Below are positions 4,339 to 30,792 of a stretch of DNA of 64,000 nt, piece by piece. Source of the DNA: Adineta vaga (taxonomy: Eukaryota > Animalia > Rotifera); NCBI GenBank assembly GCA_021613535.1, contig CP075492.1:12152001-12216000 (forward strand), written 5' to 3'. The number at the start of each line of letters is the position of its first letter. Position 1 is the first letter of the stretch. A program made the translations under genes and the position numbers. The notes under the pieces are model-generated. The model saw only the letters and a program-made list of their open reading frames with translations. It had not been told where the DNA came from and made no database searches.

Positions 4339-5730
4339 ATGAATTACTTTACCTGTACCATTATTATTGTAAGTCTTTTGTTCATCTCATCTAATATTTA
4401 ATTTTGACTATGTTTATATTTTTCAGATTGTATCAATTTCTATCTCAGCTGTTAGTACCGATAGTTGTCCAGAAGCACAATGTAAATGTTCACAAGATCT
4501 GACTGTTGTTAATTGCGATTCTAAGCCATCGTTAAACTTAAGCAACATTGAATTTCCTTCAGAAGTTGTTACTTTAACATTGATAAATGATCGACTTAAA
4601 TTTGATACAAGTAAGTACTTTCCTGCCATATCCTTTCTAATTCAAATTTTATTCTTCATCATAGGTGCTGATCGTTCGAAGATTGCAAATCTGTCCCGTT
4701 TGCAAGATCTCAGTCTTAATCACAATCCGCTGACTATTATTCCCTCATTCAATATCAGTAGTCTTCGTTCACTTTCATTACAAGATACTTCTTTAACATC
4801 GGTAGAATTTCCTCCATCATACTCGAGTTCAATTCTTCAAACTGTTATTCTAAGTGATAATAAAATTCGTTCGATAGCATCAACTGATTTTGCCGTTTTA
4901 AAAAATACCAAAACAAAAAGATTACATATCGATAGTGCTAGTCTAACTACAATCGATCAAAATGCTTTTACTCCATTAAGTCAACTTCAATCTTTATCAT
5001 TGAATAAGAATCAGTTAAAATCGTGTGACTTCCTATCAACACTTCGTGTTCTTTCTTCAATTAAACTTGACGGAAATATTTTTACTTCTCTTCCTCAACA
5101 ATTATCAACACCAAATGATATAAAAATATTCTCATTCAAAAACAATAATATCTCAATTATTGATGAATCATCATCATTATTTGTATGGCAAAAGAAGAAT
5201 TGGACGAATATGCGAGTTTATTTAGAGAAGAATCCTTTGATTGCTGTCAGTCATTGTGGTTCGTTCGTTTTTTGAAAATATCACCAAATCTTGTTGCTGA
5301 TGCATTATCATTAACATGTGTCACGCCATCAAGTTATGCTGGTAAAAAACTCATAGATCTTGATCCAAATTCGATGAATTGTGGAGGAGTTCAACCCGAA
5401 AAGTCATGGTGGACAACACAAAGAATTATAACTGTTTCTGGTGGAGGATCATTCGTAGTTTTAGTAGCTATTGGTTTTATTGTTATTTGGATTCGTCAAC
5501 GTCCATCTCGCACAGGTTATACAGAAATCGAAGGAGTAAATGAATCATTCCTAAATGCACCTCCTCCATCATCACCCAGTGAGCTTCCATTTCCACCACA
5601 CGGAGAGGATGAGACTGATGATGCTGTATCGTCATATTCTACTGCTCCTACGAGATACACAAATGCATCAGAAGCACGAACATTTAGTACTGTTGTTGGT
5701 GTTTCAGTACATGATGACAAATGCGTATAG
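4339..5730 (+). CDS. Type I transmembrane leucine-rich repeat protein (signal peptide, LRRNT, LRRs, LRRCT, TM, cytoplasmic tail), with a 1-nt frameshift near 5236
   Basis: ATG 4339; introns 4369-4426 and 4611-4663; CPEAQCKC N-cap; LxxLxLxxN repeats. The LRRCT NPFDCCQSLWF is split across the 4580 and 5185 ORFs. Hydrophobic segment FVVLVAIGFIVIWI. Confidence 0.85.
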
Positions 5731-6093: not shown

Positions 6094-6688
6094 TCAAACG
6101 TCTTCATCAGGTGGGATGACAGCGACGGCAGGTGCTTGAATACTTTTCTTTTTCTTTAATTTCAAACTATCGTTTTGTTGTTCATCGTCTGAAAAAATAT
6201 GATTTTCTGATAGATCATCTTCAGAACAGAGGGAAAATCTCGGATGAGTTTTATCAAATTTTGGTGGATATAAAACATTAGAATTGCTTGAATTCAAACT
6301 TTCATTCAGTTTTGTATCGGATGTTCCATGCCAATAAGTCATTGGACGATCAGATGCATCACTTGTTGAACGTTGACGTTGTTGAAATAGATGATCAGAT
6401 CCAAATCGACTCGATACTTTTTTTTCGAATTTTTTTTGTTCAAATGCTAAGAATTGTAGATTACTTGCTGATTTTCGTCGTTCGACATCAAGAATTCGTT
6501 GATGAGCTACGAGTAAACGATCTTTAGCAACGATATGTTTGGTACGAGTATCCAAAAGACCATTATGACAAGATACAGTACGTTGCGGTGGATGAAAGAA
6601 CTAAAACAAAAAGACAGTTAAAAAATTCTTCATCGTGAATTTTTCTTCTTCTTACTTTACTCGTTAAATCATCTTTAGATTTAGACAT
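6094..6688 (-). CDS. Uncharacterised protein of about 180 aa (basic helical N-half, Ser/Asp-rich disordered C-half)
   Basis: ATG 6688; exon MSKSKDDLTSK; GT-AG intron 6601-6655 joins in frame to the 153-aa ORF. No family recognised. Confidence 0.65.
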
Positions 6689-17632: not shown

Positions 17633-18328
17633 ATGATTGATCCACGTTTCGCCACTGCAGGCGCTATTCCAATGGCACCAGGATATGGTGCTCAGCCAGT
17701 ACCCACTCAATATCATCATCATCGTCATCATCGTCATCATAAACATAAAGCTCGCAATGATGTTTCACCAATAAGCCTTGATGAATCAATACATAAAGTA
17801 GAGCATGGTCATCGTCATCATTTTCAACAAAGTAAATAAACCAATTAAGAACTAAATCCACTAGAACAATGAGTTCGCTTCTAGATGATGGTGCCCCACT
17901 AGGTGGAGGATATGGAGTTCCATATGGTGCTGCTGGATATCTTCAGCAACAACAACAACAGCAACCACCACAACAACAGTTTGGTGGTCATAATTATGGT
18001 TACGCAAATCAATATCAAACCTCTGGTTACGGTCAAGTTCCATATGGTATTCCTCCTTCTGGACAGACAGTAAAGCGTCGTCGACGCCATCATCGCCATC
18101 ATCGCCATCATACAGCCGATGAAGTCAATCCAGAATCTACTGGAGAACATGAGCAAGCAGTACCTGAGTAAGTTTATATATCACATAGATCTATATCTTA
18201 TTAGCAATATATTTATTATAGACAGTTAATTGGTCAACGTTCATCAAGCGTTCTAGGTGATGAAGATCAACCAATACGTTCGCCAGCACCTACTAATGAT
18301 GAAAAGGCTAGTGAAGGACAACTTGTCC

Positions 18329-18359
<31 letters not shown>

Positions 18360-20715
18360 CAACCACCATCATCATCATCAACAGCAGCAGCAGCAGCAAT
18401 ATAGCAATGAGGAACAAGCTGGCTATGGTTACACACATCAATCGCATCACGGGCATAGTGGCGGCACAGTTGGTACAGATGGCTATGGTCATATTAACGA
18501 AGATTTGATCTTTATCGAACGTGGTGATCATAGTCCGCATCGACAAGAACCACCGGCTGGTTATGAATATAAGGGCAAAATCGAAGTTCAAGGCATAAAT
18601 AAAGAGTTTCAGTCTGCATCACGTGGTGCTGGTTTGAATATACCACCACCACAAATGCCAGTGCATCAACCTGTTCTACCACCACCGCCAAGTATGGGCC
18701 CATGTCCACCTGGTTGGCAACAGATGATTCTATCACCTGCTCCTGGAGGTCCTTGTCCATCCGGAGGATTACCATATACTGGACAACTGATTGGACCAGC
18801 TAGTGCAACTAGTGCATTGGAACTTATGGATCTAATAATCCCTATTCATCTCAATGTCAAATTGTTGCAGATTATATTTTTGGTCAGAATTCAGCAGCTA
18901 ACACAAGTGGATATCAACAAACAAGTGCTGTTGGTTGTGTAGAACAATAGTAAGTTTATATTGAATTTAGAATGATGAGTAAATTAATGTTTATTTATAT
19001 TTATCTAGTCAAAATCAACAAGCACTAGAACATTCAACTGCTCGTCCAACAATTATTGAAGTTTGGCAAAAACGTGCGAAGGTATTTATATTTAATCTTC
19101 GAAAAAAAAGTCATGAACAACTTCATTTCATTCTAATTTTCTTCTATTTTTCAGGGTGAAACACAAGAACGATCACGTTCCAGATCTCATCATCGCTCAC
19201 GAACTCCAGCTGAAGGTCCTGGATTTGATTTTGATCGATTTCGTGATGAAATTCTTGCTGCTATCGAGTAATCTATTCTTTTTTCGATCGTAGTTATCGC
19301 ATTTTTTCAAATAAAAATCTATAGACGTATGGTACCACGTGGCGGAGGAGCCCCTGATATTCAATGGGTTGGACGTGATGGTGGTACACAAACTCAGATT
19401 CATCCAGGTGAATCTAAAGTGGAAGAAAAACGACCATCAGGATCAGGAGAAGTACGAGTTATTGTACAACCAATTCAACCTGTCTTCTACATGCCACGTC
19501 AAAGTATGATGATGATTTAATGAATATACTGTTTTCGATAATTATAACCTTGTATCTTCTTCATTGTAGCTGGTGGAACACCAACACCTGGTACAGGTCC
19601 TGCACCTTAACGAGTGGAGCACCTAATGTTGTTTATGTTCCACGTAATGTTTACGTACCAGTTATTAAACCTGTTTTTGTTCCACGTGAACGTAAGTAAT
19701 CAAAACTTGTATCTACATACGTCTGAAAGATAATCATCAATATGTTGTTTTTTTTTCACTATTTCTACGTACAGGTGTTATTGTACGCCCTCAAGTTATA
19801 CACGTTGCACGTCCTGTTCTCGTTGATCGACCTGTACCCGTTACTCAACGACCTATTATAATTGATCGTGAAAAACCTATTCCTGTACCAGTTCGTGAAG
19901 GTCAAGCTGCAGTACAAAGCGGTGGTTCAAAAGTTGTTCGAGAAGAATATGTTTATCGAGATAACATACCTGTTGCTTATGGAGGTCGTTGTGCTGAATT
20001 TGCTGGTGGTGTTAATTATGGTTACATGCCTACACAACAAGAACATCAATATGCTACTAGTTCAACACATGAAGTATCAAATATTTATCAGACACAAGGA
20101 GCAGGTGTCAATGTAAATGTTCCCAATGAATATCAACATAGTCATTCAAGTTCTCACGTTGAAGTCCAACCGGGTTGTGAAGGAAGTTTCCATGGTTCAT
20201 ATTCGAATCTAGCTGGTCAACAAGCCCAACAATATGCATCAAGTTCGACACATGAAGCCGCAGGTATTTATCGAATATAATTATTACAAGTTTGGATTTG
20301 AAATTTTCATTTAGGTGGTGCTGGTAGTAGTTTCCACGGTTCATATTCAAATTTATCTGGAGTCAATAATGCATCTGCCGTCAATGTTGGTCATCTTAAT
20401 CAAGATGTTCTTCGACAAACTTTTGAACAATCTGCTCAAATTGCAGGTGTTCCTCCTCATTGTCCAACACAAATTGAAGTCCTCGATACAGCTGTTAATC
20501 CATTTTGGCAAAAAACAGATCAACCAACTTTAATGCGTCGTTATGGACGGCCAGCTTTTGAAATTGTTCATAAAAGTGAAGAAGTTGAACAACAAATGTA
20601 TAGTGAACTTCGTCAACGAGAGAGTAGTGCTAGTGTTTTAAGATCGGCTTCAGCCGCTAGTTATGGATCGGGTTCTGGTATAGGACTTCATGGTAATGGT
20701 GTCGCTCAATATTAA
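17633..20715 (+). CDS. Low-complexity His/Gln/Gly/Pro-rich protein with a Val/Pro-rich (articulin/epiplasmin-like) block; two apparent 1-nt frameshifts
   Basis: Exons join through canonical short introns (e.g. 17832-17884, 18168-18221, 18950-19008). The translation contains VVYVPRNVYVPVIKPVFVPRERVIVRPQVIHVARPVLVDRPVPVTQRPIIIDREKPIPVPVR. The frame needs one extra base at about 18817 and at about 19607. Confidence 0.75.
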
Positions 20716-22347
20716 AAATCGTTCTAGTTTGTTCTTGTTATTGTCCTAAGAAACATTTTAACGTATGTATTAAAAATTGTATTGAAAAAGACATCATATA
20801 TATATACAACGACTATTTACAAATTGTCATCATTCTTTGATTTTTTTTCTTTGAATTTCATTTTTTCTCATTGGTCGCATACAACAAAATTAGAAGAATC
20901 GATTTCTTCATTGTCATCGTTTTTTTATGTGTGTTTATTGTACTGTTTATTGTTCTTTTTAAAAAAAATTCGTTTTTTCTTCTTCCTAGAATAATATCGT
21001 TTATGCTATTTCTTTTTTTTTCTCTTTTTTCAAAATAAAAAAAAGAAAAAGAAACCTTCATTGAGATATTTCATATTAATTATAATGCAATTCATCTGAA
21101 ATAAGTCTTATCGGTTGATATTAGATTACATATCAATAAATATACATGTTGATTTGTCAATAGTGACCATTTCCATTGCAAAGAAAACGTCATGAGTAGG
21201 AAGAAAGTCTAGCTGTTCGATATCCTGTGTCGTTTCTTTTTTTCTTCTTCTATGATTGAATCAAACTTGATATGTGAAGTTGCATTAGCCTACGAGCATA
21301 CAACATCGATGATACCATTGTGTATGAGTGTGGAGAACAATGAAGAGAAAACTGATTCCACTTTTTAATGAAAAGAACAAACTCCTGCGGTTAATCGATT
21401 TATTTATGATTACGAAAAAGAAAATGATTGCAGATTTTACAATGACAAAAGAAACACGTAAGTTATCGAAGAAAAAAAGGAAAAAAGATTCTATATTACG
21501 TATCTGTTCGTTAAGTCTTATCAGTCAAGTTGACATACAGTTTTCAAGAGATGAAGAATGGTTGCTCCTTCTCTTCTTTTTTTTTCATTTGACTCAAATC
21601 ATCATCAACAAATAATCGTGTTCCTTTAGTCTCTGTTATCTAAAGAATAAAAGATGCAGGCAAAATGTCTGTTTCATAGATACGATTAATTGATCAGTTA
21701 TTGAAGAATAACGGAGCATCACGTACATACAGATTTGAGATATACATACACATATAACCACTCATACTCCCACGTGAATGGCTCAGAAAGATTCTTAACA
21801 ACATAGACGATTGACGTGCATAAGATCGAATATCGAGATAAAAGTCATTTTAAACAAGAATATGTAAGTTTGTTTTTATTTGATATGGATAAATTAGTGA
21901 AAGAAATCTTGTTCGAGTCATCTAAAATAGTAGTCGTTGTCATCAACAGAACGACCTAAAAATGGTAATAATCATAATAGTAAATCTGTTCTTTTTCTTT
22001 TCACTGATAAAAAAAAGAAAGATATATATATATATATATACATGTTATAGATACATATCCGTATATCAAACTGAGATTTCTTTTTATTATATAGAAGTAC
22101 TTTATTCCTTGGTTTTTTTACGTAAGTAGTATGCTTTTTGATTCGTTGTCTAGTTGAAAAGGTTAAACTTGTCAGAGAGATTTTATATGTTTATCTTTCG
22201 TAGAATGTTTACGTTTGGAGAAATAAATATACGTATAGATGAATTTGCGTAGTTAACTGACAAAGTCATTTTCTAACTTAGGCGATATCATCGATCATGA
22301 GACAAATCAATGATAATCCTGGTTAGTTCCTGTAGAATAAATCTTTA

Positions 22348-24245
22348 ATGGCGAATTCAAACAATCAAGAACATGTACCTATGACTGTTACGAAACATTA
22401 TGGTCAATCGGAAATAAGTCATAGACTTGATGCAACAAATGAAATAGGAAAGAAAAATATTCAAATAATTAAACAAGGTCAACGGGCTAATTGGAGTAAT
22501 CGTATTGTTTATCTTCTATCGATTATTGGTTTTGTTGTTGATCTTGGTAACTATAACTTATCTTAATAAAATCTGAAATATTTCGAAATGTTCTTTCTAG
22601 GAAATGTTTGGCGTTTTCCTACAACATGTTATCGAAATGGTGGTGGTGCTTTTCTTCTTCCTTATTTTACCTTTTTATTTCTTGTTGGTCTTCCTTGTAA
22701 GTTTATATTCATTTTCAAATGTCTACATTCGTCGTTTCTTTCATAAAAATAGGTATGTATATGGAATTAGCTATCGGTCAATATCATCGTCTTGGTTACA
22801 TAACTATATGGGATAAAATATTTCCTCCATTGAAAGGTATTGGTTATTCAATGTTAATTATCAATTTATATGTTTTATCATATTATAATACAATTATTGC
22901 TTGGTCAGTTCATTATTGTTTAGCATCATTTCGTGCGATTCTTCCATGGACATTTTGTCATAATGAATGGAATACTCATTTATGCTATTCTTTACATGAT
23001 AAACGATCGTTGAATGTTACTCATAATGCATCCTATTCATCAACAGATGAATATTTTGAACGACGTATGTTAAAATCGCATTTATCATCAGGTATTGACA
23101 ACTTAGGTTCATTACAATGGGAATTAGTTGGTTGTTCAATCATTGTTTTTCTTCTTATTTATCTTTCAATATTTAAAGGAGTTAAAACAGCAGGAAAAGC
23201 AATTTGGTTTACAGCCTTAGTTCCTTATGCTGTTTTAATTATTTTATTATTACGTTCATTAACATTAGATGGTATCTTCGAAGGTTTAAAATATTATGTT
23301 GCACCATCATTTGAACGTTTAGGTGAATATTCTGTATGGCAAGCAGCTGCTGTTCAAATCTTTTTCAGTTTAGGACCTGGTTTTGGTGTTTTACTTAGTT
23401 ATGCTAGTTTTACTGATACACATGATAATGTCTCTGGTACAGCGTTGATTGCTAGTTTAGTTAATTGTTCCACAAGTTTATTATATGGAACAGTTGTTTT
23501 TGCTGGTCTTGGTTATCTATCACATCGTTTACATAGTGATGTACGACAATTTACTGAAAGTAATATGGGTCTTGTATTTGTTGTTTATCCCGAAATTTTA
23601 ACATCAATACGTGGTGCACCATTTTTTTCGATTCTTTTCTTTATTATGTTATTAACATTGGGACTTGATAGTGTTTTTGCTGGTGCAGAAAGTATCTATA
23701 CAGCCATATCAGATGAATTTCCAATCTTAGCTCGTCGTCCTCGTATATCACGTGCTTGTGTTGTTTTAGTCCCGTTTTTAATATCAATTCCAACATTAAC
23801 AAATGGAGGAAAATATGTTATTCATTTTATGGATTTTTTTGGTACATCACCATCGATTATGTTCATTGTTCTTTGTGAACTTATTGCAACTGTATGGATA
23901 TATGGCATGGATAAATTTAGTAGTAATGTGGAAACGATGACTGGACATAAGCCAAGTATTTATTGGCGTATTACTTGTCGTTATATTGCACCATTAATTC
24001 TATTTATACTCTACGTTTGTTCATTTATTCAATTTGATAGTCAAGAATTTGTGTCATTTGGTGGAAAAAATACAGCATTGAAAGTTAGCATTGCCGGATG
24101 GTCATTGAGTACAATATCGACATTACCAATTCCAATGTATGCATGTTGGTGGTATTTATTTCGACGTCAAACATCAACAACAACAACAACAACGATTGTT
24201 ATTGCAGAACCAATCCCAAATAATGAACAGGAACCGTTTATATAA
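22348..24245 (+). CDS. SLC6 sodium:neurotransmitter symporter, monoamine-transporter type
   Basis: TM1 [34 protein letters not shown]2 cysteines, [18 protein letters not shown]; two introns near the 5' end. Confidence 0.93.
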
Positions 24246-25531
24246 AATGAACAGTAGTAGTGTTTTTTTTTGTATTTTATTTCTTTTTCTTTTTTCGAGT
24301 GTCGTAATCTCATAGAAATAAAAAAAATCAGAGACAATATTCGTAGTGTTCGAATTTTTTAAGTAAATGATTAAAAAAGCTTGTGTATCAAAAATATTGT
24401 TTTAACTCTTTATACGCCATAGAAGAAGTGGTCAGTTATTGTAGAAAATGACATTGTTCAATGTCATTGTATCATCTGAATAACTGATTTCTACTGGTAT
24501 TTGGCCAAGATACTTTTTCGTTCTGGTTCGATTTAATAGAATATAATTCAAATTTGGTGATATTGTTTGGACTTTAAAATAAGATTTACATGGAAGACCA
24601 AAGTTAAAACGAATTGAAAAACTATATGAAACCTTTCTAACTCTTATTCTTCAACTCTATATTATTCGATAGATCATTATACAGACATGCAGTTCATAGA
24701 ATTATCATAATGCCTTTCAATATAATACTCTTTGAAAGTTCAAAACGTTTTCAATATAATATCAAAAAATATGTATTGTCGTACTAGTCTTCTGTGGATA
24801 AGAGGAATCTGACAATTATTTAACCAGAAATATTCCTTAAATGTGTATTGTAAATGATTCTGACATTTTCAAGACGAAATAAATAGTAAAAGATCATAAT
24901 GCGCGTAGTAATAATAAAAATAAATGTAATTATAGAATGTATAATTAAGAACAGATTCAATTTAAGAATAATTCCATCGTCGGTCGCTATCTATGCAATA
25001 CGTGGCGCTTTTTATAGCTACAAAGAAAAAGAAAAAATGTAAGGTAAGAATACTCTGATAGCGATCGTAGGAGTAATTATCAATAGAAGAAAATACTATA
25101 GCCATATGTGCGATGGATGATTATGATTCACTACATTATCATTCAATTCAAAACATCTGGATTAAAATGTTACACATATATATAACAGATCCCAAAATAT
25201 ATGCATCAAAATCCAAACTATAGATTAAAAGTACGGGAAAGGTATGTATTCGAATACTGTTCTTCCATTTGGAAAAGCTCCAAAATGAATGATCATTTGT
25301 TTATTTCTATACACAAAAAAAATATTATTAATACATCGATGATATGTATCAAAAGTGTTAAGGAGAAAACGATGACAGATCTATTTGCATCAATAACAAT
25401 GATAGTGTTTCAGAATGCAAAACATGCAACTATTGCTTGAGTATAAAAAAATATTTTCGTCGAAACGTTGTGCTAAGCACCGGTTAGTTTATATTACTTG
25501 ATTTTGTATATTTACATATAAAGAAAGTAAT

Positions 25532-27165
25532 TCAAATATCATCGAATAGTAAATATCGTTGTAAGAAAATCGGTAAATCTAATTTTTTTACAGTACGATC
25601 TATACGTATTTTCATTGTTGAATTAAATAATGAATCTCGAATTTGTTTTCGTGTTATATTTTTTAATGTTTGTGCTGTTGTTGCATGATGATAGATTTCT
25701 TTCTTCGTTTTCTCATCCAATTCTGTACATTCTGTAATGTAACTTCGATGAAATAAATAAGCAGCATCACAAAGTAATTCAATTAAACATGAATTCGATT
25801 GAAATCGGCGTAAAAAACGTAAGACACTATCTAAAAATGAGCAAACAAGATTTCTTTTTTTTTCTTATGAAAATGAAAATCGATAATAATCAAACCTCGT
25901 CCTCGTGAAAATGAAACTCGTGCACCATAACCAATCAATAAACGAATAATTCTCATATCTAATCTTTGATCACGAGCATAATTAATATAAGTCACTAATG
26001 GTGTTCGATATGGTACATGTTGATGATGGTGTTGAGGATTATATGAAACTGATTGATTAGGTTGAGCATCATTCTCTAGAAGATTTTTAATAATAGAATA
26101 TTGATTCTTTAAATTTGATAATTGACAAGCAAGAATTAAGGGAGTAATACATTCATTATCTTCATTTGTTTCTTCATTTGTATCGGCACCAAATGCTAGA
26201 AGAAGAAGAAGACAAAAAAAGCAGGAAATGAACAATGACTTCGTTTAAACAATCTCATTGATTACCAATTAATAATTGTATTGTATCAATATTATCTTTC
26301 CGGATAGCTAATTCTAATGGTGAATTACATAAATCCGGATGTTTATTGACAAAACCATCATGAACTAATAACTGTTCAATAATATCACATCGTTTCGATT
26401 CGATTGCTGTTATTAAAGCATTTCGTTGTCGAAATTTTCTGGTAACATAATTAACATTCGCACCATATCGACATAATAGAACGACTGCAGCAAGATTTTC
26501 TTCTCGACATGCTTTAATCAATGGTGTAATACCGCTACGTGAAAGTGCATTTGCATTTGCACCATGTTTTAATATTAATTCGAGTGATAGAAGATTTTCA
26601 TAAGGTAATAAATTAATTTCATAACCAAGAAAATAATGTTGATTAACATTTGCTCCAGAAAAAAGTAATAAACGTGCACAATCGATATGATTATTTTCTA
26701 AACAAAGACTTAGTGGTTGAATCACAATTTCCTGATGGGAAGTTACAACTGAATGTGTTTGAGAGCTCTGTAGTGGAGTATGAAAATTAACGGACGAACC
26801 ATGATCAATTAGAATATGTATAATATCAATGAAACCATATTTTGAAGCTAAATGTAGAGGTGAATAACCTGCTTCATCAAGAACATTAACATCTGCATGA
26901 TAATCTTCGATAAGAAGACGAACACATTCGAGATCATTCTCAAAGACTGCATAATGTAATGGTCGAAGGCCACGACGTACAGTTCCATCAATATTCAGTT
27001 GTTTAAAACTGAAACAAAAAAAGAGCAAAGAATTGATTCGATTTTTCTTAGGATTTCATTCAAATACCAAAGAATACGTTTTATATCTTTCAAGGGTAAA
27101 TGTTGTACGATCGCATCACGAAGAAGTGAAAGGAGTGAATCTCCATCGCCAATATTTACAGACAT
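25532..27165 (-). CDS. Ankyrin repeat and SOCS box protein (ASB family)
   Basis: Ankyrin repeats (LRPLHYAV, GYSPLHLAS, GITPLIKAC) and a C-terminal SOCS box TLKNITRKQIR...LDLPIFLQRYLLF; three short introns. Confidence 0.88.
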
Positions 27166-27638
27166 TTTGCTGTTGTTGTTGTTGTTGTTGTTGTTGCTTA
27201 TTCTTCTTCTTTTGCATTATCTAGATTTTTGTTTCCTCCTATTTATACAACTCGATCTAAGCCCCCTTACACTTTAGTACGTAATTCCGTCTTTTTTCCA
27301 GCGGCTTTTCTTTTTCTTCGTTTCTGTCATTATCGTATCATCTGATCTTTTCATGTCGAGGTTGTCGTCTGATGGATATATATATACAAAGAACATCTAG
27401 CATCAATGCTACTATACTAGAGATGCACCCAATCACTACTGATTAAGCTTGCAGTTTCGTGACAAATGACAAGAATAGAATAGATATATAGATGCACATG
27501 TTAACCTTTCATTATCTTTTTTTAATAATATTTTCTTGCTAGTGTATCAACGATCGAACTAAATCATCATCACAATGTTCTTGCATTTATTTATATATAA
27601 CGAAAAGAAGGACAAAGTAGCCAGACAACTATTATTAT

Positions 27639-28258
27639 CGGTCAAGTGAACCAATAAATTGTGTGTACAAAAAGGATAAGTATTGTGTGACCGATCCATA
27701 CATCTCGAGTAATGAGAAAAAAAGAATTATGTCGGTCAATTCGACCTCCTTATGTAGATATAGACAATGTGTACTACAGATTCAAACAATAATCATATCG
27801 GTCATAACTAACGAAGAGAAATGTTCTTCATAACCTTCTTCTCTTTTGTTTCTTCTCTTTTGAAAAAATTCAATAGAAAGCTTAAATTGACCTTATTCTT
27901 CTCGTTCTCGAGTGAACGAGAAAAACATATTCATCATCTCATGTTGTCGGTCATCCATTCGATAATTCCTCAAGTTTAAAGCAAAGAGAACAACTCTATA
28001 TACACATACACATAAGGTCAACGATTGTGTGTGCAGATGTTCATAAGAAAGAGAAAGGAAGAGAATGGGTACATATAACGGCCATCAAAAGAGAGAGAGA
28101 GAAGCAGGTCACATTGACCTAACTCATTTTGACCGCAGACATGTACACATACATCTGCATCATATTACTTTGACCTAAAAACAAAAACTAAACGAGAGAA
28201 TGAATTAGGGCAACGAGAGAAAATCTATTGAGAAGGAATAAGAGAGAAAGAAAGGTCA
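27639..28258. promoter_or_regulatory. Cluster of 12 nuclear-receptor half-sites ([A/C]GGTCA), including a perfect IR3 palindrome AGGTCAcatTGACCT at 28106-28120
   Basis: CGGTCA at 27639, 27733, 27799, 27948; TGACCG at 27688, 28130; AGGTCA at 28015, 28106, 28253; TGACCT at 27888, 28115, 28171. Lies between the divergently transcribed ASB and NFIL3 genes. Confidence 0.7.
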
Positions 28259-28389
28259 GTTTCGTGTCCGAGTCCAACGTGAATAGACGTTCATCTAGAT
28301 TCTTCGACAAGCACAATGACGACAAGCATTCAAGTTCGTTGTTAACCATAATCTCTTGAAAAAGTCTTATTTCTTTCATTAAATAGAAA

Positions 28390-29847
28390 ATGCAATCGAA
28401 CGATTTCCTTCGTTCATCAGCCTCTTCTCCATTCATGGAATCATCTCCATTACTTTCGAATAATTTTCATTCACAATTAAATATGCTCTATGCTCTTACA
28501 CAGCAACATCAACAACAACAACAACAACAACAGATCTCACCGCCTGATTCGAAAATCAAACGAATCAAGTATGTTTTTGAGTTTCTGTTTTCTTTTCAAT
28601 TTAAAACCTTTCTTTATTTTGTTAAGAAAATCAATGTCATTATCTAACGATCTTCCTACCCAAGTACCATTGATATCCGCTACTGAAACTGCCTGTTTAA
28701 CTGATCGTGAAGTAGTAAAAGTTGTAACAACAGCAGGTCCACAATGTGTCGATAAAGATTTTTTAACACAATTATTAACAAGAAAAGATGTTATTCCAGC
28801 ACGTAAACGTCGTGATTTTATTCCTAATGATATGAAAGATGATCACTATTGGGAACGACGACGTAAAAATAATCTAGCTGCTAAACGTTCACGAGAAAAA
28901 CGTCGTTTAAATGATATTGTTCTTGGTAAGAGAAACCGAAGGTTTTTTTTTGCAAAAATTTTCTATAAAAATTCTTATTTTTTAGAAACCAAAGTAGTCG
29001 AATTAACAAATGAAAATGAAGCATTAAAAGCTAAACTTCATCTAATGCTTTCACGTATAAATATGAAAGAAACTGACATGGAAACACTCTTTGAAGAAGA
29101 ACAACGTCTTGGTCATATATGTCTTAAACCAGCTACAACAGCTTCAACTATTTTCGGTTCAAATGAATCAGATAATGATGATGAATATTCATCACATGAA
29201 GATCTTCGTTTTACTCAACAATCAAAACCTAACAATGACAATACAGCCATAGATTTAAGTCGTACAGAAGTTAAAACAGGAAATTTATTACGTAAAAGTC
29301 CATCACCATTAACACCGTCACCTTCACCACCCAATGAATCTTTACTACAAATTCTTGCTAATCAAATGCTTCATACAAAACCACAAGAAACTTCATCATC
29401 ACGTTTATTAACCATTGCTTCTCCGCCTGAAACAAAACCATTGAAACGAGCTTACAATCAATTACAACAAGATAATGATCAACAGCAAAAATGGGATGAA
29501 GCAGCAATGACATTACTTTCATTAAATAAACCACAACCACCAACTGCACCTGTTGAACAACAAGTTGCACTTCAATCTGTAATTAATGGTCTACTACGAA
29601 AACCAAATCCTCCAAGAGCGACTATTGATTATCATAGTCAACAGCCATCGAGTGAAAATTTCACTTCATTTGAACAATGGAAAACTTTAATGAATTATTT
29701 TTCCATGCCATCAACACAACAATCCACACATCCAATGCAACAAATACTCATTCTCAACAAATACAATCACAAAATCAACAACATGAACCACGTGGCGATA
29801 TGATGCCATTAAAATTACGAATGAAAATGTTAAATGCAAAAATTTAA
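28390..29847 (+). CDS. NFIL3: bZIP transcription factor, NFIL3/E4BP4/vrille family; apparent 1-nt frameshift near 29739
   Basis: [48 protein letters not shown] matches the NFIL3/vrille basic region and zipper. The corrected C-terminus reads [10 protein letters not shown] and ends at TAA 29845-29847. Confidence 0.85.
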
Positions 29848-30792
29848 TATCAATACGAAGAGCTGAAGCACAAGTTATAACAGTAAATTGAACAGTTTGT
29901 TTTCGTACATATGTATATCTATTTAACGAATCGATTTTATTGAAAATGATAGACAAGACAAGAAATTGGCGGCGAGGTGTGAGCAGAGACATGGACTCCT
30001 ATTCGAGGAGATGATTGTATAGACAAAAAAAAACGAGAAGACACACTCGATAGTGTGTGGTAATAATAAGAAGGCAGGCGAGGCCCCACATTACAGTTCG
30101 CCGCTCACTAAAGCGTCCTGCACAAAATTGAATTCTAACATTTACATGAGGTAAAGGAAAACGAGATGATGTATATTGTAGTTGTTATATAAACAAGAGG
30201 AGAAAGCAAGAAAAAAAATAATCTTATGTATTTAAATTGTGTCATATTGCATGTTTTATCTTATTCTTCATCGAATATTTTACTCCGAATGTTGTTAAAT
30301 GTTTTCTTTTGTTTGTTTTCTTTTTCGTTAATAAATAATTAAGCAATACAAAAAATAATAATTTAGCAAAACTAGTTTCATATATTGATCTCTTTGTGTA
30401 CAGAATGTATCGTATTCATTATCAATTCAACCATGAAGGTCATTTACAACTTTATTTTAATGAATGCGATCGAATGTATTGCCTTTTTTTCTTCTTCTTC
30501 TTCTCCTTCTTCTTTCGTTTCATTTCGACCATACAGGGATTGCATAAACACTTTTTTCTTTGCTTTTATTCGTATCTTCATACCAATAGATGATCGATGT
30601 TCAGAGTGCATGTAAAATGACAGACGATCGATGTTCAACGTCGTACGAATAAAAGCTATCATCGATATTCACCTGATCATTCAACCATATCACATTCATT
30701 CATTTTGAATAAACATTTCAATACTCTTGTTCTTGCAATATTGTTCAATAAAGAAAGAGGACACATCATAAGAAATATTTAAACGGTCAACG

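Follow-up and report, generated by a model that had tools for sequence, protein, structure and literature searches.

The DNA upstream of an NFIL3/vrille-like bZIP gene of Adineta vaga contains a dense cluster of GGTCA half-sites that has been kept site by site on both ohnologs and across bdelloid genera, and this is almost certainly a regulatory module of the bZIP gene that is functional and under selection. The module occupies positions 27600-28290 (plus strand) of the window, i.e., the whole 64,000-nucleotide stretch analysed here, and it comprises the GGTCA cluster together with other invariant blocks. As in other conserved cis-regulatory modules, the sites are dense, they are placed upstream of a covered transcript and they have been under purifying selection, and the A. 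vaga genome encodes receptors that fit them. We consider it likely, with a probability of about 0.6, that this is a promoter-proximal module of the bZIP gene whose half-sites are read by nuclear receptors; that receptors bind the module, which receptors these would be and in which direction they would act is what we infer from it.

The window derives from contig 3 of A. vaga in the six-contig, 100.8-Mb assembly, and the best protein match to the window gene carries the name Adineta vaga. The cluster lies between a minus-strand ASB-like gene (25532-27165) and the plus-strand NFIL3/vrille-like bZIP gene, and the gene order SNF, ASB (minus), bZIP (plus), cyclophilin is common to Adineta and Rotaria. 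Both neighbours had been named in a preliminary description of this DNA, and both assignments were borne out by the Pfam and protein searches. The ASB-like gene encodes ankyrin repeats (Ank families, E 5e-33) followed by a C-terminal SOCS box (PF07525, E 3.7e-5, above the cut-off), which is the composition of an ASB protein. For the bZIP gene, the queries were its separate exons and the natural open frame 28490-29800, in which an in-frame 60-nt intron is read through; the gene encodes a bZIP_2 domain (PF07716, E 2.5e-10), fish NFIL3 proteins are its closest relatives outside the rotifers and one metagenomic match is named vrille. The vertebrate NFIL3 C-terminal domain PF06529 is absent and exon 3 is without any Pfam match, and because PF06529 was defined on vertebrate proteins, its absence is expected outside vertebrates.

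The first, very short exon of the bZIP gene was traced as far as RNA contigs extend (28272-28333, plus strand) and contains an ATG at 28316, the equivalent of which is the annotated start in A. steineri, R. magnacalcarata and the B ohnologs. In run X3, one RNA contig joins 28272-28333 to 28387-28485 and omits 53 nt with GT..AG ends. The rest of the gene, recognised by bZIP_2 and RNA contigs, occupies 28387-29847 (plus strand) with exons at 28387-28568, 28627-28925 and from 28986 to about 29847. Three introns (28334-28386, 28569-28626 and 28925-28984) are backed by RNA contigs from four runs, and an extra T behind 29728 in all four runs shifts the stop codon to about 29847. The contigs of the four runs cover the bZIP exons and extend 5' to 28272; none was placed on 27100-28271, with the simple repeats at 27100-27221 and 28495-28538 omitted from the placement, and contigs of this kind can neither prove absence of transcription nor fix a start. 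Since contig coverage stops at 28272 and 27100-28271 is bare of contigs, we regard the cluster as upstream DNA, its proximal end coinciding with the 5' limit of the covered transcript.

Exactly 12 GGTCA words occur at 27640-28258, seven on the plus and five on the minus strand, and the base before GGTCA is always A or C; the count agrees with the 12 in about 620 bp of the preliminary description. The expected number per 620 bp is 0.63, close to the 0.5 estimated there, and the Poisson probability of at least 12 is 4.5e-12. The whole window holds 65 GGTCA words, about 1 per kb, versus 64 expected from shuffling, so the word is without general enrichment in the window. Among 200 Markov simulations of the window, no 620-bp segment held more than six GGTCA, and the second-densest place of the real window holds four. 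When all 5-mers of 27600-28300 were scanned against the rest of the window, GGTCA ranked first (P 2.3e-12), and TCGGTCA ranked first among the 7-mers, with 5 found versus 0.04 expected. C precedes GGTCA in six of the 12 sites, and five of these six read TCGGTCA; all five TCGGTCA sites are located in the distal half (27638-27953), and their T and C are largely conserved. Likenesses of the TCGGTCA flanks to plant-type DRE (CCGAC), Myb (TAACGG) and SOX (ACAAT) sites were considered, and none accounts for the common GGTCA core.

Repeat and tandem-repeat searches showed that the 12 sites have only the core and a few flanking bases in common. A repeat or tandem-repeat origin of the cluster was ruled out by these searches and by a DNA search of the genome, in which the locus is single-copy apart from its ohnolog on contig 6. 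For the module no Rfam family came near any gathering score, and it contains no long ORF. It does contain enriched GAGA-type words and other invariant blocks, which show that factors besides GGTCA readers are involved as well. No CACGTG E-box, as in fly vrille control, was found on reading the module, and the conserved AACGTGAA at 28275 is a partial E-box match only.

Comparable clusters are rare in the A. vaga genome so far as a 110-kb sample and two whole-genome pattern counts can tell, and within that coverage the refuting condition named in the preliminary description, that such clusters are common genome-wide, did not hold. No 620-bp segment of the 110 kb sampled from other A. vaga loci held more than 5 sites. 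Dense half-site triples with gaps of up to 30 nt numbered 51 genome-wide versus 43 for the control, many of them in repeats. The perfect inverted repeat with a 3-base spacer (IR3), RGGTCAnnnTGACCY, occurs 8 times in the 100.8-Mb genome versus 5 times for the reversed control; two of the eight are this ohnolog pair, and none of the other six is in a dense cluster. Because perfect IR3s are without genome-wide enrichment, there is no sign of a large regulon of oestrogen response elements (EREs). Given 12 sites in 620 bp, exact IR3 spacing would be expected by chance in roughly 5% of cases by our estimate, and the perfect palindrome in the module therefore carries weight only because it is conserved.

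The DNA search of the A. vaga genome returned one other copy of the spacer, on contig 6 beside the ohnologous bZIP gene. This copy contains 15 GGTCA in about 810 bp, and ten of the 12 window sites have positional counterparts with similar flanks there. The orthologous loci of other bdelloids were located through their proteins, and eight sequences were compared, namely this copy, the contig 6 ohnolog, A. steineri, A. ricciae A and B, Rotaria sp. Silwood2, R. magnacalcarata and Rotaria sp. Silwood1 B. In Adineta, the spacer between the ASB and bZIP genes holds 14 (A. steineri), 12 (A. ricciae A) and 15 (A. ricciae B) GGTCA words, and in Rotaria 13 (Silwood2), 13 (R. magnacalcarata) and 14 (Silwood1 B); the flanking DNA has 0.6-1.2 per kb. 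All these spacers, the contig 6 copy included, carry the sites in one order and orientation, and according to the site lists nine of the 12 are common to all eight Adineta and Rotaria sequences, two apparent losses in the MAFFT alignment being artefacts of gap placement. In that alignment, which consists of short conserved blocks separated by gaps of variable length, 80% of the core positions are invariant versus 35% in the rest of the module. Mean retention among the seven other sequences was 5.75 for the GGTCA sites versus 2.21 for other 5-mers, and none of 20000 random draws matched the mean of the sites. The synonymous sites of the bZIP gene are near saturation, the identity at four-fold sites being 0.46-0.64 versus 0.41 expected at saturation, and in 16 kb of synteny no intergenic DNA other than the module aligns between the ohnologs. 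The module most likely predates the split of the ohnologs, because it has been kept on both ohnolog lineages in Adineta and Rotaria.

Conservation also extends, for the most part, to Didymodactylos carnosus, in which the annotated bZIP start was found to be too far upstream and the real exon 2 is at 6652 of the locus sequence L019. Collinear counterparts of S2, E1, S4, the TAACGGTCA site, the right half of E3, S10, the GAATTAGGGCAACGA block and AAAGGTCA (elements described below) are present upstream of this gene, and the left half of E3 was not found there. The preliminary description had conceded that its proposal would fail if the sites were not conserved in orthologous promoters; this comparison was run, and the sites proved to be conserved between the ohnologs and in three bdelloid families. 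The Didymodactylos module accompanies the bZIP gene, whose neighbour there is not an ASB gene, and the idea that the divergent ASB gene is co-regulated, also raised earlier, is weak and draws no support from the sequence. The module is evidently old within Bdelloidea and travels with the bZIP gene. In the monogonont Brachionus calyciflorus, for which orthology of the gene is uncertain, the upstream region showed no cluster (1.65 vs 1.2 sites per kb).

The distal part of the module begins with half-site S1, TCGGTCA (27638-27644, plus strand), which is kept in all Adineta sequences and in the B ohnologs; its equivalent in the two Rotaria A sequences is CAGTCA. S2, TCGGTCAcacaat (27688-27694, minus strand), is present in all eight Adineta and Rotaria sequences and reads TGTGTGACCGAT in Didymodactylos. 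The imperfect IR3 E1, CGGTCA-att-CGACCT (CGGTCAattCGACCT, 27733-27747), sits in a 47-bp nearly invariant block (27720-27770); both of its halves are invariant in the eight sequences and its spacer varies (att, gtt, gct), the Didymodactylos form being AGGTCAtctCAACCT. At S4, TCGGTCAtaac (27798-27804, plus strand), the GGTCATAAC part is invariant in the eight sequences, and the base preceding GGTCA varies between C and A, with A in two B ohnologs in which GGTCA is kept. E2, AGCTTAaatTGACCT (27879-27893), is a decayed IR3 whose right half TGACCT (27888, minus strand) alone is intact. At the aligned place the Adineta B ohnologs have the left half instead (AGGTCAyatTAACCT), which suggests that E2 was probably a full IR3 ancestrally and decayed reciprocally in the ohnologs. 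S6, TCGGTCA (27947-27953, plus strand), is contained in the block TGTCGGTCATCCrTTyGATAATT, which is invariant in the eight sequences.

The proximal part starts with S7, TAAGGTCAA (28013-28021, plus strand), which is present in all eight sequences; a gap at this site in the MAFFT alignment is an alignment artefact according to the site lists. An ancestral half-site has been lost in this copy at 28074-28083 (plus strand; ATAACGGCCA), where position 28078 reads GGCCA; its equivalent is (A/T)AAyGGTCA in six of the seven other sequences, ATAACGATCA in Rotaria sp. Silwood1 B and TAACGGTCA in Didymodactylos. The exact IR3 described earlier is present as E3, AGGTCA-cat-TGACCT (AGGTCAcatTGACCT, 28106-28120), which has the consensus ERE arrangement. 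Both GGTCA cores of E3 are invariant in the eight sequences, the spacer takes five forms (cat, agt, gct, gat, ctt), and the counterpart in the contig 6 ohnolog is GGGTCAagtTGACCC. Two imperfect IR3s had also been proposed; that at 27733-27747 (E1) stood, and that at 28121-28135 (AACTCAtttTGACCG) did not, being left out of the IR3 list because its left half is poor and is not kept in the relatives. Within the latter stretch S10, TGACCG on the plus strand (28130-28135, minus-strand site), is a conserved half-site in the invariant block TGACCGCAGACATGT; it lies 15 nt start-to-start from the right half of E3 in seven of the eight sequences and 16 nt in one, and is also kept in Didymodactylos. S11, TTTTTAGGTCAaag (28171-28181, minus strand), is the most RORE-like site (TTTTTAGGTCA) and is kept in all five A-ohnolog sequences and lost in all three B-ohnolog sequences. 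The NBRE-like site reported at 28251 was found there as S12, AAAGGTCA (28251-28258, plus strand), which is invariant in the eight sequences and adjoins the initiator-like AGTTTCGTGTCC. Didymodactylos keeps both AAAGGTCA and AGTTTCATGTCC at a distance of 17 nt, so S12 and the initiator-like block are separate elements.

Receptors that could read such sites are encoded by A. vaga. The genome contains 163 exon-level zf-C4 matches, and the best translated ones include RXR, COUP-TF, HNF4, NR5A, NR4A and NR2E types and two ER-type copies. The exons of the ER-type DNA-binding domain (DBD) are at C5:12522355 and C2:5045237, and those of the NR4A type at C4:2287718 and C1:9762457 (contig:position). The ER-type exon on contig 5 scores 102 bits to the human ER DBD (1hcq) versus 71 bits to ERR, and read across the splice site (GVWSCEGCKAFFKRSIQG) it has the P-box CEGCKA and the D-box PATNT. 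The copy on contig 2 has WSCEG at the donor and the same second exon as the contig 5 copy. No obvious ROR or REV-ERB was seen among the best 20 of the 163 zf-C4 matches. In a yeast assay, oestradiol elicits a response from an ER-like ligand-binding domain of the monogonont Brachionus (PMC5336670), and bdelloids have receptors with two DNA-binding domains (PMC10497141). Our literature search returned no paper linking bdelloids with NFIL3 or vrille and no direct target of an ER-type receptor in rotifers.

Compared with known response elements, E3 is an exact consensus ERE, i.e., two inverted RGGTCA with a 3-base spacer, and as in EREs the half-sites and their spacing have been under selection in the eight sequences and the sequence of the spacer has been free. 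A. vaga also encodes an ER-type DBD, and the D-box of the contig 5 copy is nearly identical to that of vertebrate ER. Unlike a typical ERE, the A. vaga element is found within an array of ten further non-ERE half-sites, and it is a candidate ERE by sequence. S12 is likewise a candidate NBRE, being the exact octamer AAAGGTCA and conserved in a genome with an NR4A-type DBD.

REV-ERB-alpha binds and represses mouse Nfil3 (PMC6400287), and the A. vaga module resembles the RORE/RevRE elements of mammalian Nfil3 in belonging to the same target gene family and in having a candidate nuclear-receptor input through AGGTCA-type half-sites near the promoter. On the other hand, RORE-like sequence is limited to 28171-28181 (TTTTTAGGTCA) and, in a loose sense, the right half of E3 (half-site at 28115). 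An A/T-rich extension ending in T and followed by RGGTCA is not what the sites in general display, as six have C and the others A in front. The REV-ERB/ROR and circadian-clock reading of the preliminary description found no support in the sequence, with six of 12 sites reading CGGTCA and only one or two having T and an A/T-rich extension, and homology of the A. vaga regulatory DNA with the mammalian Nfil3 elements cannot be claimed. EcR/USP prefers an inverted repeat with a 1-base spacer, and no such repeat is conserved in the A. vaga module. In this the module differs from the Drosophila system, in which multi-platform evidence supports direct EcR control of vrille (PMC4978916), and the likeness to that system is that there a steroid receptor acts on the fly member of the same bZIP family. 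The module is also similar to homotypic site clusters, in which many copies of a short core lie within a few hundred bases beside a regulator gene and keep their order and orientation. Its depth is unusual among them, since both copies from an old bdelloid genome doubling keep it in Adineta and Rotaria with intergenic neighbours that are no longer alignable.

Under the reading that we favour, the module would represent an array of about 13 ancestral nuclear-receptor-type half-sites, 12 of which are intact in this copy. Two or three IR3s, including the perfect consensus at 28106-28120, would be best suited to an ER-type dimer, single half-sites with conserved 5' extensions (AAAGGTCA, TAAGGTCAA and TTTTTAGGTCA) would suit monomeric receptors, and the five TCGGTCA sites would form a distal group. 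Occupancy of the sites by one or several A. vaga nuclear receptors would then set the transcription of the bZIP gene, which probably starts at or just upstream of 28272. Nuclear receptors are the best-supported readers because the module combines IR3s with a free spacer, an exact NBRE and decay variants typical of receptor sites, and because fitting receptors are encoded in the genome. It is quite improbable that the GGTCA core is read throughout by a factor other than a nuclear receptor, so that the likeness to receptor elements would be coincidental. Such a reader would agree with a core of only 5 bases and with flanks that fit no single known receptor consensus, but it would leave to coincidence an IR3 geometry with invariant halves and free spacer that is found two or three times, as well as the exact NBRE octamer AAAGGTCA and the fitting receptors. 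The decay products point the same way: GGCCA has replaced GGTCA at 28078 in this copy and at 27888 in A. ricciae A, the Adineta B copies have GGTTA instead, and both GGCCA and GGTTA are variants known from receptor sites.

The main rival is a mixed array, because the TCGGTCA class matches no characterised receptor site that we know of; here the AGGTCA-type sites and IR3s would be bound by receptors and the five distal TCGGTCA sites by a different DNA-binding protein, giving two unrelated inputs. We regard this as unlikely. Textbook receptor half-sites have A or G before GGTCA, so that a C at this position is atypical, and the excess of TCGGTCA (5 vs 0.04 expected), its confinement to the distal half, the conservation of its T and C and the presence of other invariant blocks and GAGA-type words all speak for a second input. 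However, at S4 two B ohnologs have A in place of the C with GGTCA kept, as predicted for one GGTCA-reading factor, and E1 pairs CGGTCA with an inverted CGACCT at the 3-base spacing typical of receptors, invariantly in the eight sequences. It is very improbable that the conserved stretch instead belongs to a transcript (a long 5' UTR, upstream exon or non-coding RNA) and owes its conservation to RNA function. Bdelloid mRNAs can be trans-spliced, which would hide their true 5' starts, and RNA contigs cannot prove that a transcript is absent; nevertheless, four runs that cover the exons gave no contig on 27100-28271, the sites are on both strands and form short blocks with gaps of variable length between them, and neither an Rfam match nor a long ORF was found. 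A chance cluster or functionless repeat relic has a negligible probability. Only the general rule that short words will cluster somewhere in a large genome speaks for it, and against it stand the Poisson value of 4.5e-12, the lack of repeat structure and a locus that is single-copy apart from its ohnolog; it is refuted by conservation of site after site across genera in which synonymous positions are nearly saturated.

It is debated whether invertebrate ER-type receptors are sequence-specific, ligand-controlled regulators, and the module, which is short, deeply conserved and mapped with precision, can serve rotifer receptor biology as a test object. It assembles beside one regulator gene a consensus ERE, two related inverted repeats, an exact NBRE and the novel TCGGTCA class, and through it a rotifer oestrogen-type receptor gains a candidate target. 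A regulatory module can be preserved site by site on bdelloid ohnologs whose neighbouring intergenic DNA has ceased to align, and because the module has been retained in this way, footprinting between ohnologs and across genera is usable for finding bdelloid regulatory DNA. More speculatively, and with considerable doubt, nuclear-receptor input into NFIL3/vrille genes may be an ancient bilaterian link, represented by REV-ERB/ROR in mammals, by EcR in flies and by the present module in rotifers, which in bdelloids would include a true ER-type dimer site selected on both copies since the genome doubling. If this is true, that site would be the first candidate for a place in the genome on which a rotifer steroid-type receptor acts directly.

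The second most enriched class of words in the conserved GGTCA-cluster module upstream of the NFIL3/vrille-like bZIP gene was of the GAGA type, with AGAGA and GAGAA each occurring 15 times in window 27600-28300 (1.8 and 2.2 expected, respectively), and some of these words fall in blocks that are invariant, GGGCAACGAGAGAAA being one of them. In the half of the spacer nearer to ASB (window 27240-27590), the Adineta and Rotaria A ohnologs share conserved blocks, for instance GTCGAGGTTGTCGTC, CGTGACAAATGACAAGA and ATGTTAACCTTTCATTATC. This half contains no GGTCA words and showed no alignment to the B ohnologs; it is probably the ASB promoter. GGTCA words also occur in window 17807-24434, where 16 of 17 lie on the plus strand, and this excess is probably a codon effect, since coding sequence on that strand makes up most of the region. 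In Brachionus calyciflorus, GTTACGGTCAAAAGTG is present twice in inverted orientation (5260-5345 of the locus), at a distance of about 700 bp upstream from the bZIP gene, and the pair bears a faint resemblance to the bdelloid ATAACGGTCAA site.

The bZIP gene itself carries, in window 28316-28386, an unlisted mini-exon (ATGACGACAAGCATTCAA) and, following it, a 53-nt intron, as confirmed by one RNA contig; the start codon is probably at 28316 rather than at 28390. Relative to the window sequence, all four RNA runs had an extra T behind window 29728, and therefore the open frame of the assembly shifts at this position. With the extra T included, the reading frame changes and the protein continues until a stop codon near 29847. 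The extra T reflects an indel in the assembly or else a difference between strains. The 3' untranslated region (window 29850-30124) is still alignable to that of the contig 6 ohnolog, with about 66% identity, and the intergenic DNA beyond it lacks such alignment.

The Adineta vaga genome encodes an ER-type DNA-binding domain in an ohnologous pair of exons, on contig 5 (C5:12522355-12522501; P-box CEGCKA, D-box PATNT) and contig 2 (C2:5045237-5045383), and this domain is nearly identical to that of vertebrate ER. Many dense half-site triples of the genome stem from a repeated element of GGTCACG/CGTGACC units (GGTCACGCGTGACCGTGATCGTGACC), which was found close to where contigs 2 and 3 begin (C2:179517-179560, C3:144186-144247 and C3:443905-443968). 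Of the eight perfect IR3 palindromes (RGGTCAnnnTGACCY) in the genome, two are contained in or adjoin nuclear-receptor genes: one (C3:9864539-9864553) is located between two matches to exons of the nuclear-receptor zinc-finger domain, zf-C4 (C3:9864220-9864698), and the other (C2:9392337-9392351) is separated by about 340 bp from one of the zf-C4 matches of a receptor array (C2:9391896-9414141).
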